A stretch of DNA of 63,368 nucleotides, the filler included, from Octopus bimaculoides (lineage: Eukaryota): assembly GCF_001194135.2 (NCBI RefSeq). It is 7 parts of 7 records of this genome, joined end to end, with 100 filler letters (N's around TTAATTAATTAA, not from the genome) between each part and the next. Parts side by side here need not be neighbours in the genome. Positions count along the whole stretch, not along the records: positions 23,911 to 29,933 come from NC_068985.1; 6 more parts are not named here. One strand, written 5' to 3'. Below are positions 25,892-30,033 of this stretch, piece by piece. The notes beneath the pieces are model-generated. The model worked only from the letters and a program-made list of their open reading frames with translations, was not told where the DNA came from and ran no database searches. Position 1 is the first letter of the stretch; every line of letters begins with the position of its first letter. The position numbers were made by a program, and so were the translations under genes.

Positions 25892-28276
25892 ATGCAGATT
25901 GTAACAGTATTTTTATCAATCACCATTATTATCTCACTGACATCATTAAACATACATGCGAAAAAAATCGGAAATAATTGTGAGATTAAAATTTCTCACA
26001 ATGTCAGTCAAATTTTAACTCGTTTAGTAAAATCAGGCAAACTGGTTTTCAATTTTGAAGTCCATATAGCTGATAAAAAGCTTGACGGCCTTCTGAATCC
26101 TGTACCACTGGATTATTTTGCAAATGCGAGGCATTTCATGTGGATTCCAGATAATCCAGATGGTTTAGTAATGTATAAAAATGTCCTCTTTGATTTTTCA
26201 ATTCATTCATTTAATATATTAGATGTCTACATTGCTTCTCTAAATATTGTTGTCGATATAAATTGTGGGAAACAAAATATTCAGAGATACAATGTGGTAA
26301 ATTTGATTTTCGAAGAATTAAGGAGAATCGTATTTATCGATGACTTGCAGATGGGAGAATCTGGATACATGTGTTTTTTTATAAATTTGTCTCGTCGCTT
26401 GAGGAATAACAGCCTTTCTACGTTATTGGCATGCAGAAGATTGGGTATAAATCGAGAGATACTGAAGAACTATTGCTGTCTACTACATAATGACGATAAC
26501 CACACTTACGAATCGAAATCCGTTTGTTCTGGAAACATCATTGAAAATAGTATGTTTGTCGATTGTGCAAATATTGTTGGAGCAGTTCTGTGGGCTATAT
26601 TTCCATTATTGATCAGTTTTGTATCAGAAGCTAAATTACCCCTATCAGCTAACCACTCTTTGCCAACTGGAAACACATCGCTAAATTCCCGTGAACCTAA
26701 CCAGCAACAATCAGCAGACGAGGAATTAGCTTTGTCAACTGAGCACAAATCACCAGATTCTCGTGAACCTAACCGGCAACAATCAGCTGATAAGGAAGTA
26801 GTTTTGTCAACTGCGCACGCATCGCCAGATTCCCGTGAACCTAACCAGCAACAATTACATTACGATGAATTTACAACTGAATACCTATTGCCAGACAAAT
26901 CGGAATGGATTTGTGTAAAACATGATATTTACAGTTTTTCGTATTTTTCATCGAGGTTATTTTGTTTTCATCATTCGACTTTCTTTGTCTCAAGACTAAG
27001 AAGAAGTATTCTTATTCTGCTTTCTCTCTCAGTAATTCTCCTGGATCTTTTAATGTATTACTTTTTTTTATATGAAACGTTGACAATATTTTCCCATGAT
27101 CGCATTCCATTGGGCTATCGCTCCTTCATTCTAGGGATCCCTAAAGGTAATGAACTTTCAGATAGTTTTGTTTTGAATCCCATTGTTGTGATAATCAGTT
27201 ACATAATTGTTAACTTTATTCTCTTAGTTCTTCCAAGTCGTTTAAGTGATACTATCGCTTATAATGCATTATATCAAGAATCCACTTGCACATTTCTCAT
27301 TAAAGATAAAAATTTTTTAGTGGAGTTTGGTAATTTGAATGTTACTACACTTCGGGATTATGATCGACTCCTTGCAATAATGAAAGCTAATATTTCTGTT
27401 GCTGCAAACCCAAATTTCTGGCACTTACTATTTAGTACTTGGATTAAACGTATAAAAAAAATATGGGATAAAAATGTTCCAAAATTTATATTATTCTTGC
27501 CTATTATTGTGATTACGATTTTATTTGCTGTATTTTCTATTTGCGAATTACTTCTGTGTCTCGTTTATTACGGAATCCCCTTCGTATATTTGATTCTAAC
27601 TTTACCATTAAGTTATTTCAAAGTGTATATTTTACCTCTCTATAAGAAACGTAATCGTATTTTCAAGTGTGTTACTGTAATTTTACCGTTGATGTCATTG
27701 CCAATTTTTATAGCATGGGCAATTTATTCAAGCTACGTATTTCTTATGAGTTTTCAAATCATTTGCAGTTATATATTTTCAATAGCTACCGCAGTGCTTG
27801 CCAAACCTGAAACTGCTAGCGATACATGGTTTGTTACCACATTTTTCATGTACGGTTTTACAGATATGAAAGGTATTCAGGAACATTATCACACGTTACT
27901 CGTTGAATTTATACAGTTAACCAAAACTGTTCGCCCAGATTTAGTTCTGTCTAAATATGGAGAGGAATTCATTAAAGCCAAATTGTTTAAAGAAATAGTT
28001 AACAATCACTGTTCTTTGAGACACGAGATTGGTAAATCCATTTTAAAACTATTTCTAGTCGTATCTTTTTTCTTTGCTTGCAACAATATAATAAATCGAA
28101 AGGACTTGGATTTATCAAGATTCACACGGATTGCCTTGGTGTTGATGACTTCTGCGATACCTAAATTTTTCTCGAAAATTAATACTAAATTTCCTTTTAA
28201 TAAACCTCTGTTAGACAATGTTATTGAAACAATTAAAACATTTGGAAAACGAAATGAATCCGAGAGCAAGTTATGA
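25892..28276 (+). CDS. Uncharacterised multipass membrane protein (~794 aa): signal peptide, ~200-aa Cys-containing ectodomain, ~9-10 predicted TM helices; single coding exon
   Basis: Stop-free 2.4-kb ORF in otherwise stop-rich, repeat-filled DNA. A polypyrimidine tract and acceptor (ttcaattttctttattacAG, ending 25872) lie 19 nt before an in-frame ATG at 25892; the track's TTG start at 25877 is not a eukaryotic start. N-terminal MQIVTVFLSITIIISLTSLNIHA looks like a signal peptide. Many 18-25 aa hydrophobic runs; no transposase or RT motifs. Confidence 0.85.
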   Translation: MQIVTVFLSITIIISLTSLNIHAKKIGNNCEIKISHNVSQILTRLVKSGKLVFNFEVHIADKKLDGLLNPVPLDYFANARHFMWIPDNPDGLVMYKNVLFDFSIHSFNILDVYIASLNIVVDINCGKQNIQRYNVVNLIFEELRRIVFIDDLQMGESGYMCFFINLSRRLRNNSLSTLLACRRLGINREILKNYCCLLHNDDNHTYESKSVCSGNIIENSMFVDCANIVGAVLWAIFPLLISFVSEAKLPLSANHSLPTGNTSLNSREPNQQQSADEELALSTEHKSPDSREPNRQQSADKEVVLSTAHASPDSREPNQQQLHYDEFTTEYLLPDKSEWICVKHDIYSFSYFSSRLFCFHHSTFFVSRLRRSILILLSLSVILLDLLMYYFFLYETLTIFSHDRIPLGYRSFILGIPKGNELSDSFVLNPIVVIISYIIVNFILLVLPSRLSDTIAYNALYQESTCTFLIKDKNFLVEFGNLNVTTLRDYDRLLAIMKANISVAANPNFWHLLFSTWIKRIKKIWDKNVPKFILFLPIIVITILFAVFSICELLLCLVYYGIPFVYLILTLPLSYFKVYILPLYKKRNRIFKCVTVILPLMSLPIFIAWAIYSSYVFLMSFQIICSYIFSIATAVLAKPETASDTWFVTTFFMYGFTDMKGIQEHYHTLLVEFIQLTKTVRPDLVLSKYGEEFIKAKLFKEIVNNHCSLRHEIGKSILKLFLVVSFFFACNNIINRKDLDLSRFTRIALVLMTSAIPKFFSKINTKFPFNKPLLDNVIETIKTFGKRNESESKL
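26685..26855 (+). repeat. 72-bp (24-aa) in-frame tandem repeat, ~2.4 copies, inside the CDS
   Basis: SREPNQQQSADEELALSTEHKSPD / SREPNRQQSADKEVVLSTAHASPD / SREPNQQQ; DNA core ttc(c/t)cgtgaacctaacc(a/g)gcaacaat occurs three times at 72-nt spacing. Confidence 0.9.
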
Positions 28277-28559
28277 AATCATTAACCTTTTTTGAAAACT
28301 GAAACTATTCCAATATTCCAGAAATTATTCCAACGCTTTTAACTACTGTGCATAGTAATCTGATGGATTACACCTGATTTTTAGCTCCTTCGACACTCTT
28401 AGCATCATTACCGTACGCATCTTCCTTACTTCATAAATTTCGACTATTGATGTCAGTGGTAACTGCAACGAGTCTCTTTTACGATAAATAGCTGAGCTGT
28501 TCTAATGAATACATTGCATTTTTGTTCAATTATTTGAACTCGTGATAGCACCACGTCGT

Positions 28560-29000
28560 ATATTAAAAATGGCCACGAAGGGCGCAGATATAAGCCGAAC
28601 TGAAAGCGCCATATTTTACATCCCTGGTAATTTTATTTATCAATTACTGTTAGTCCACATCCGGATTGTTCTATTATCTGCATCCCACGACTCTTCTCTG
28701 GCAATGTTCCAGCCTATATACACTCCAAGCTCTTTACGCGTTCTTCTTTAACTGTTGGAATACTTTCTGTTGCTATTTTAAATTTTACTTTAATTTTTTC
28801 ACTGCCCTAATAAATGTTAGAATACGTGTCTTTTTTGCTCTAAATTGCATCCTTTATTGCTTTATCAGCTCGTCTAGCCTCGTGAGGGCACTCTGCAAGA
28901 TTTGCTTGTCTATAGATAGAAGTGTCAGGTCATCCATTAAGGCCTTCTTAGGTGAGTGTATATGGGCCGTTTGTTCCAAGATGAATGTCACATTCAAGTT
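28560..29000 (-). mobile_element. Hero-like RT fragment, antisense to the gene
   Basis: Minus translation KALMDDLTLLS...LTRLDELIKQ*RMQFRAKKTRIL...FKIATESIPTVKEERVKSL...LPG resembles the Hero-type RT (MDD motif at 28929-28937). Confidence 0.65.
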
Positions 29001-30033
29001 ATAATTTACAATTTTTTATATTGTAATTTTCTACTTGTAATTTTATGATTTTAAACTTCATACATATACGCTTTACCCCAATCCCCTGTTCCTGCAGTTC
29101 CCTCTAGAGGATCGTTATATGCATATTACTAGCTAACTATCAATTTTCCCTCTCTACGGCTTTATCTACTACTCCATTTCTAAAGAATTCGCAACTTACT
29201 GCATGACTTATATAAAGTTTTATTTCTGCTAATTCTAAACTCTTATTCTTAACCTTTAAACTTAACACATTATATATTTTATCTTATCCCTTTTTACCCT
29301 AATCCCGTTTTACTACAGTATGTTTTATAGGGCTGTCATACCTATATTACTAGCTAAGTGTTTATTTTCAATCTAAGCATCTTATCTCCTACATTTTATA
29401 CGACTCGCTATTGTAATTATCCCAGTGCTCTTCGACATACTAAAATTTTAAATTTCAAATTTATTTTCCTATATCTTCTCTATTTTCTCTATTTTATATA
29501 TCTTCGATTTACCTAAACTATATTCGTTCAAAACTGACATATATTATAAAATCTTTTGACCACTTTTCAATTAAAGTATTCTGGCAATCGTTTTCTATCT
29601 GCTATAAGTAATTCTGGCAATAGTTCTTGCCATTGTCATCAGTTTCATCCGACTCATGCTTTTAATCTCCTTAAACTGATATAATTTCTCACCCATGAAA
29701 TGAATTTTGGTACCGGTGACAATGTTGTACTGACTGACCATTCTGAGAATCTTTAATCCAGATACACTGGTTTGTTATATATTGTCTTTTCCTCATTCAT
29801 TATTGTCCGTAGTTCTTATTTTTCCTTTTTCTCCTTCTCTCATGATCTCTATACTAATTATTCACCGTCTAAAAATACTTCTATCCACTTTTCGTTTCCT
29901 CTCGATATAAGCAAAAAAAAAAAAAAAAAAAAANNNNNNNNNNNNNNNNNNNNNNNNNNNNNNNNNNNNNNNNNNNNTTAATTAATTAANNNNNNNNNNN
30001 NNNNNNNNNNNNNNNNNNNNNNNNNNNNNNNNN

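Follow-up and report, generated by a model that had tools for sequence, protein, structure and literature searches.

The stretch of DNA studied here (the window) comprises 63,368 nucleotides (nt) of Octopus bimaculoides, filler included, and the piece analysed within it was window 23911-29933, from NC_068985.1. This piece is AT-rich (GC content 26-40%) and holds a single long open reading frame (ORF), listed as 25877-28276 under bacterial start rules, whose first ATG lies at 25892. We found that 25892-28276 is a functional-looking protein-coding gene, its frame held open by selection. It is predicted to encode a multi-pass membrane protein whose family, by the searches of sequence and predicted structure made here, falls within no described protein family and no solved fold, its relatives being already in the databases as unnamed predictions. 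The coding sequence (CDS) and the features of its product, with transmembrane (TM) helices numbered from the N-terminus and positions of the product in amino acids (aa), are as follows.

25883..25885, + strand: ACG where the family usually has its first ATG (T-A-V-M-Q in the window, MA(A/V)MQ in paralogues)
25892..28276, + strand: complete, uninterrupted CDS, 794 codons plus a TGA stop at 28274-28276
25892..25960, + strand: putative signal peptide or N-terminal anchor, aa 1-23; hydropathy peak 2.19, hydrophobic family-wide, low predicted local distance difference test (pLDDT) score
25961..26548, + strand: predicted extracellular or luminal alpha/beta domain, aa 24-219 (196 aa); pLDDT 83-95, six family-conserved Cys, four N-glycosylation sequons
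26549..26629, + strand: TM1, aa 220-246, predicted by hydropathy and by the model
26630..26977, + strand: disordered, presumably cytosolic linker, aa 247-362; pLDDT 23-47, least conserved part family-wide (14% identity)
26658..26873, + strand: three in-frame 72-nt (24-aa) tandem repeat units in the linker (S-R-E-P-N-Q-Q-Q-S-A-D-E-E...)
26978..28186, + strand: predicted membrane core, aa 363-765; pLDDT mostly 80-95
27545..27547, + strand: codon of Glu552, an acidic residue predicted inside TM4 and nearly invariant (at least 90% of 42 sequences, annelid to octopus)
28187..28273, + strand: basic amphipathic C-terminal helix, aa 766-794, presumably cytosolic by model and charge; poorly conserved

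The first-pass annotation, made from the sequence alone, had taken the long intact ORF for a coding gene of a multi-pass membrane protein, and the length of the frame bears this out. With a stop probability of 0.068 per random codon, calculated from the base composition of the piece, the chance of 794 consecutive open codons is about 4e-25. Rfam and tRNA scans of the piece were both without matches. Most octopod paralogues begin with MA(A/V)MQ, and since the usual first ATG is ACG in the window, translation must begin at the second Met (25892).

The signal-like N-terminus described in that annotation was recovered as a hydrophobic stretch over residues 1-23, and so was the ectodomain of about 200 aa (196 aa here), with its four sequons (NVS37, NLS165, NNS172 and NHT203) and its CC pair (C195-C196). 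The count of eight ectodomain Cys needed correction: seven lie in the ectodomain (C30, C125, C161, C181, C195, C196 and C212), and the eighth, C225, exists within TM1. Apart from C181 and C225, each of these is conserved in 90% or more of 42 family sequences. Six conserved Cys suggest three disulfides, and the ectodomain is probably disulfide-bonded. Family-wide, the ectodomain has 2.1 sequons per 100 aa vs 0.3-1.0 in most other loops (at most 1.6 in two very short loops), and 3.8 Cys per 100 aa.

After the ectodomain, hydropathy confirmed the layout first described, of TM1, a long polar loop and about eight to nine further hydrophobic segments. These segments are 371-389, 428-448, 532-572 (double), 592-635 (double), 639-658 (weaker), 713-735 and 744-761. 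Averaged over the family, hydropathy places TM1 at 224-245 and resolves 532-572 into two helices with a YYGxP turn. The first half of the core runs from TM2 through an outer loop bearing IPLG..GGP (aa 394-429) and TM3 to a helical insert with LNPxFW (aa 451-529). It is followed by the TM4-5 hairpin with its YYGxP turn, TM6-7/8, a beta-hairpin and helix (aa 661-712, GIPxxLF..P.R) and TM8-9.

The structure was predicted with AlphaFold2. When the 18 octopod sequences alone were supplied the model was unusable (pLDDT 43), and addition of the 35 distant relatives raised the score to 80. The model built on the 42-sequence family alignment (A2) has a pLDDT of 80.2 and a predicted template modelling score of 0.78. 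The modelled ectodomain contains strands at 30-34, 52-59, 81-86, 114-125, 157-165 and 191-199 with helices between them, residues 254-335 are disordered, and the remainder of the protein after the linker is helical. Loop 5/6, cyt2 and the C-terminus are enriched in lysine and arginine (21.7, 16.2 and 19.8%, respectively). A topology with the N-terminus outside, the C-terminus inside and nine TM helices, possibly ten, fits the hydropathy, sequon density and charge bias, which would also place the linker and the inserts in the cytosol. Nine helices are thus favoured over the ten or so first proposed, and ten are possible; since AlphaFold2 draws 589-637 as a single 49-residue helix, the count stays at nine or ten. 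As predicted, these features support a membrane glycoprotein of the secretory pathway with a folded Cys-rich ectodomain, a disordered linker and a conserved multi-helix core that carries an acidic residue.

The protein had been called an orphan, which it is not. Searches matched 18 octopod proteins with 46-65% identity (E 1e-118 to 1e-282) in O. bimaculoides, O. sinensis, O. vulgaris and Argonauta hians. Octopods have about ten paralogues, loosely clustered, and paralogues on one chromosome are separated by 90 kb in O. bimaculoides and by 300 kb in O. sinensis. A search of 1.84 billion cluster representatives (50% identity clusters) with the octopod profile returned 135 clusters at E<=0.001, 114 of them at E<=1e-10. 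Most of the 135 are 730-880 aa long and matched over nearly their full length. We looked up 30 of these clusters; as names could be had for about a quarter of the whole set, the distribution may be wider than given here. Each cluster with a species name belongs either to the bivalves (Mytilus spp., Ostrea edulis, Saccostrea spp., Mercenaria, Mya, Sinanodonta and Potamilus) or, outside molluscs, to the brachiopod Lingula anatina or the annelid Owenia fusiformis. The presence of mollusc, brachiopod and annelid members indicates that the family is at least as old as their common ancestor, and from the sequences its distribution across Lophotrochozoa looks vertical.

We found the CDS to be single-exon in every locus examined, the criterion in the fetched loci being a gene range equal to (residues + 1) x 3. 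These loci were L001, L003 and L009 of O. bimaculoides, L002, L005 and L010 of O. sinensis, L004 of Saccostrea, L006 of Lingula and L007 of Owenia. As the CDS is uninterrupted from Owenia and Lingula to octopus, this is an ancestral trait of the family and not the signature of an octopus or cephalopod retrogene. Nor did the family arise in cephalopods, given the homologues in bivalves, Lingula and Owenia.

Residues P448, P563 and P757 are invariant in the 42-sequence alignment, from annelid to octopus, and R371, G415, G428, G429, P430, N506, F509, W510, R520, E552, P639, Y654 and Y666 are nearly so. Further conserved elements are W84 in a W-x-W-T motif, the S106/L110 motif and the GIPxxLF..P.R motif; R371 lies at the predicted cytosolic start of TM2. 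The window protein keeps every invariant and nearly invariant column, and has all the hallmarks of the family, namely the signal peptide, the six Cys with the CC pair, W-x-W-T, SR..R before TM2, IPLG..GGP, LNPxFW, the Glu of TM4, YYGxP, GIPxxLF..P.R and the single-exon CDS. Conservation is fairly even along the protein family-wide, being highest in the outer loop and TM3 and lowest in the linker and the C-terminus. The ectodomain varies no more than the other parts, so nothing points to a diversifying ligand-binding domain. Judged by its conservation and predicted position, no other single residue is as good a candidate as Glu552 for a functional site within the membrane.

We then compared the family with what is known. 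Pfam gave no consistent match at E<=10 to any of 53 members (the window protein, 17 octopod proteins and 35 distant relatives), and none of the weak matches across the 35 distant members recurs. NCBIfam gave no match, and nothing meaningful was found among the PDB sequences, either by phmmer or by hmmsearch with the octopod and broad family profiles. Foldseek of the AlphaFold2 model gave no match at E<0.7 in PDB or BFVD; the best 50 of 93 PDB matches all had E>1, with a TM-score of at most 0.12 and a probability of at most 0.08, and included phosphodiesterase catalytic domains and TRPC/TRPM. All named cluster members are labelled 'uncharacterized' or 'hypothetical'. The literature searched does not mention the twelve family locus ids looked for and describes no such family, lophotrochozoan-specific TM families included. 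The proposal that the protein belongs to an uncharacterised family was in this way upheld, with no solved structure resembling the model and no known channel or transporter family matched.

Several particular assignments were rejected in the same searches. A seven-TM (7TM) G protein-coupled receptor (rhodopsin, secretin, class C or frizzled), already discounted in the first-pass annotation, finds no 7tm_* Pfam match, and the protein has 9-10 predicted helices and a 116-aa linker after TM1. A Cys-loop channel, including the chemotactile receptors of octopus, was likewise rejected: neither Neur_chan_LBD nor Neur_chan_memb was matched and the topology is not four-TM. That conclusion had been drawn earlier and holds for want of a receptor domain, but the argument then given for it, absence of a C-x13-C spacing, was wrong, since C181-C195 has this spacing; C181 is not conserved in the family. 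TMC, OSCA-TMEM63 and TMEM16, otopetrin, pannexin/innexin, CALHM and insect 7TM channels had no Pfam match in the 53 members, and no structure of TMC, OSCA, TMEM16, otopetrin, pannexin, CALHM or the insect channels was among the best 50 of 93 Foldseek PDB matches.

These results do not dispose of every relation to a known structure in the same measure. The protein might be a very divergent form of a known channel or transporter fold, such as TMEM16/OSCA/TMC, a TRP or polycystin-like channel, or a GOLD-domain 7TM protein of the Wntless/TMEM87 kind. All-helical membrane cores are difficult for methods based on 3Di and sequence, the weak top Foldseek matches include TRPC3, TRPC1/5 and TRPM3 (E 1.5-5), and a layout of ectodomain plus helical core is reminiscent of several such channel and transporter families. 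Like the window protein, Wntless/TMEM87, SID-1 and polycystin-1/PKDREJ combine a signal sequence with an N-terminal folded ectodomain and a core of several helices, and PKDREJ is likewise intronless. However, the window protein is without the GOLD-7TM, SID-1_RNA_chan, PKD_channel, PLAT and REJ domains of Pfam, these proteins gave no Foldseek match among the best 50 of 93, and its ectodomain is modelled as alpha/beta and not as a beta-sandwich. With no Pfam model of the proposed fold families found at E<=10, no match among PDB sequences and the very low structural scores given above, we regard a divergent known fold as clearly unlikely.

We also compared the gene with its orthologue. Scaffold L002 of O. 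sinensis (VCDQ01000806.1) is collinear with the window through the CDS and both flanks, and there the gene (L002 10001-12817) is a single open frame of 938 codons. The NCBI model of this orthologue, LOC118761507 (P0005, 841 aa), removes a 291-nt 'intron' that encodes TM4-TM7; the short models P0016 and P0018 appear to be truncated much like it. The 24-aa linker repeat (SPxSxEPNQQQSxxEE...) has about three units in the window vs about 8-9 in O. sinensis (L002 about 10800-11450). As it is absent from other octopod paralogues, it marks this orthologous subgroup and evolves by gain and loss of units. The ratio of non-synonymous to synonymous substitution rates (dN/dS) between the two orthologues is 0.71 (Nei-Gojobori; bootstrap 95% 0.57-0.90), which is below 1, at a synonymous divergence (dS) of about 0.30. 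By region, it is 0.36 in the ectodomain and about 1 both in the TM core and in the C-terminal part; for other pairs within the family it lies at 0.29-0.60. Identity to the orthologue is 81-83% in the CDS and 80-84.5% in the flanks, and by codon position it is 78, 83 and 79% (first, second and third). An identity no higher than that of the flanks, together with nearly flat codon positions, points to a weak constraint on the amino acids. This constraint is weak but real.

These data bring up a second alternative, that the gene is a recently relaxed paralogue on its way to becoming a pseudogene, its open frame a leftover. Such a course would agree with the overall dN/dS and its value of about 1 in the TM core and the C-terminus, with the flank-like identity and lack of codon periodicity, with the change of the first ATG to ACG and with linker repeats that are expanding and contracting. 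Yet frames of 794 and 938 codons are both open across a dS of about 0.30. In a neutral simulation, the window ORF was open in 1% of trials at 5% substitutions and in 0/2000 at 10% or more. Indels between the orthologues are all in frame, all residues invariant in the family are kept, and the upper bootstrap bound of dN/dS remains below 1, with the ectodomain well under it. A start at the second Met is also not peculiar to the window gene, as the first ATG is likewise gone in another intact paralogue (O. bimaculoides L001), where the second Met is the start. Since both orthologues are intact, with in-frame indels and the result of the simulation, the frame is clearly protected. We consider relaxation to be improbable, and from the sequence comparison read the gene as fast-evolving but functional.

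The only functional name on any relative is that given by UniRef to P0002 and P0003 of O. bimaculoides, 'Receptor for retinol uptake STRA6'. On this reading the protein would be a STRA6-type receptor for retinol-binding protein, passing retinol between a carrier outside the cell and the cell itself. STRA6 has nine TM helices, an outer N-terminus and an inner C-terminus (PDB 5SY1), a topology that the prediction made here would fit (ten helices being possible, and the feature not being specific to STRA6), and the window protein is of a similar size class. We observed no other likeness. At E<=10, PF14752 (RBP_receptor) matched 0/53 family members. A human STRA6 query served as control, and matched PF14752 with 869 bits over the full profile and retrieved the zebrafish 5sy1 at 2.6e-169. 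When the 42-sequence family profile was aligned by hhalign with human, and with human plus zebrafish STRA6, the probability was 0.1-0.2% (E 0.3-0.5). The structure 5sy1 is present in the PDB sequence set and was not retrieved by the family profile, and STRA6 is absent from the best 50 of 93 Foldseek PDB matches at E<=10. STRA6 itself is without a signal peptide, a 200-aa Cys-rich ectodomain or the long disordered linker between TM1 and TM2 that the window protein has, and vertebrate STRA6 genes are multi-exon. A literature search on STRA6 with octopus or mollusc found nothing relevant. The label is thus unsupported by Pfam, hhalign and Foldseek, with just a generic predicted topology in common, and a STRA6-type function is very improbable. 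The label, which is corrected here, may propagate to other molluscan annotations.

A transposon ORF had also been excluded in the first-pass annotation. The single-exon CDS, the many copies per genome and the flanking repeats might still suggest that a transposon or a virus supplied the ORF, as a domesticated or a selfish one. This is scarcely credible, since Pfam finds no transposase, reverse transcriptase, integrase or envelope domain and BFVD no match, the orthologous position is syntenic with its flanks kept between species, a putative host-like splice acceptor is conserved in the five octopus loci aligned, genes usual for the host (gelsolin, ankyrin-repeat, Arf and WD40) lie next to family members, and the family is old.

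We therefore return to a real gene of a new family, for which a membrane device of the cell surface is proposed, and this explanation as a whole seems to us fairly probable. Some of our own observations count against it. These are the loss of the usual first ATG, a dN/dS of about 1 over the TM core and the C-terminal part, CDS identity no higher than that of the flanks and the nearly flat codon positions; to them are added a TM count that stays at nine or ten, an ectodomain that is no more variable than the rest, unlike the diversifying domain of a chemoreceptor, and the lack of any signal of internal duplication in the TM core (an inverted repeat of the transporter type) when helix blocks were compared by hhalign. 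Further, no ligand, pore or substrate was identified by any analysis here.

As to function, a receptor, channel or transporter of the cell surface is a possibility that we put forward tentatively, with the remaining weight spread over an enzyme, a scramblase, a trafficking factor and an adhesion protein. The protein would reside in the plasma membrane or a membrane of the secretory pathway and act as an ectodomain-coupled device, either a receptor or gated channel or a transporter of small molecules or ions. The ectodomain and the outer loop with IPLG..GGP would form its external face. Glu552 in TM4, with the conserved Pro and Gly kinks, might provide a polar site or conduction path, and the helix bundle around it could serve to bind a small polar species, to conduct one or to relay a conformational signal. 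The repeat-bearing linker and the basic C-terminus may be regulatory or docking elements.

The evolutionary pattern of the family, with many paralogues, loose clusters, a dN/dS of 0.3-0.7 and an uninterrupted CDS, resembles by analogy that of receptor families for environmental sensing. To the odorant and gustatory receptor 7TM channels of insects and the nicotinic-type chemotactile receptors of octopus it is alike in this pattern only. The window protein differs from them in architecture (signal peptide, ectodomain, nine predicted TM helices), has no 7tm_6, 7tm_7 or Neur_chan match, and its ectodomain is not the fast-evolving part. The boldest form of the proposal, which as a whole is rather unlikely, would be a new membrane machine restricted to Lophotrochozoa and of unseen fold. 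In it a disulfide-bonded ectodomain would be joined to an eight-helix core with the intramembrane Glu to make a ligand-gated channel, receptor or transporter, and the expansion of its paralogues in octopods and bivalves would serve environmental or immune sensing.

If the result holds, this could be among the larger animal membrane-protein families still uncharacterised. Its members, about 800 aa long, occur in three phyla or more, and it has grown to some ten copies or more in octopuses and to many clusters in bivalves. A confident model to which no known structure comes close would bring a new membrane fold, and the intramembrane Glu and the conserved outer loop offer direct targets for mutation. 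The family would also supply a set of cephalopod and bivalve candidates for sensory, immune or transport roles hidden from vertebrate-centred annotation. Dark families are numerous, and we regard this one as a lead rather than a discovery. Two faulty gene models are corrected by the present analysis.

One other gene model touches the family. The O. vulgaris protein P0019, named 'cytoplasmic-like' (1010 aa), joins gelsolin domains to a family member. A gelsolin gene lies immediately upstream of the paralogue P0002 in O. bimaculoides (L001 1-7460), so the fusion is probably an artefact of annotation that reflects conserved gene order.

Outside the CDS we noted two further features.

25857..25872, + strand: candidate 3' splice acceptor, polypyrimidine tract plus TTACAG, with its AG at 25871-25872, 19 nt upstream of the ATG
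28277..29013, + strand: 3' flank, collinear with the orthologous locus of O. sinensis (80% identity to L002 12818-13577)

The acceptor motif TTTT(C/T)T..TTACAG|A is invariant and lies 13-19 nt upstream of the start codon in 5/5 octopus loci aligned (alignment A4: the window, L002 and L005 of O. sinensis, L001 and L003 of O. bimaculoides). Such a conserved motif upstream of the ATG suggests an intron in the 5' untranslated region (UTR), and the gene probably has a non-coding 5' exon spliced onto the acceptor at 25871-25872. The description of the gene as intronless is accordingly right for its CDS and probably not for its 5' UTR. The 3' flank is probably 3' UTR or neighbouring DNA, and contains a candidate AATAAA at 28809-28814.

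The remaining observations concern repeats. Upstream, 0.7-1.3 kb from the start codon, is a foldback structure (24549-25210) resembling a miniature inverted-repeat transposable element (MITE). Its 115-nt arms, inverted and 85% complementary, occupy 24608-24722 and 24786-24900; the arm recurs a third time at 25085-25166, and a (TA)22 microsatellite (25157-25200) adjoins the structure. Nothing corresponds to this structure in that part of the orthologous locus of O. sinensis which was aligned. A dispersed repeat of about 200 nt at 24352-24562 has several matches of 75-84% on either strand of the unrelated loci L001 and L003 of O. bimaculoides, and probably belongs to a MITE family or to one of short interspersed nuclear elements. 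On the other side of the gene, within 29014-29374, an 82-nt segment is directly duplicated (29072-29153 and 29293-29374; 71% identity, 221 nt apart). As 29014-29185 is without counterpart at the O. sinensis orthologue, it appears to be a local insertion or duplication. The terminus of the piece, 29913-29933, is a run of 21 A, perhaps left as a tail by a retroposed element, or just the edge of the piece.

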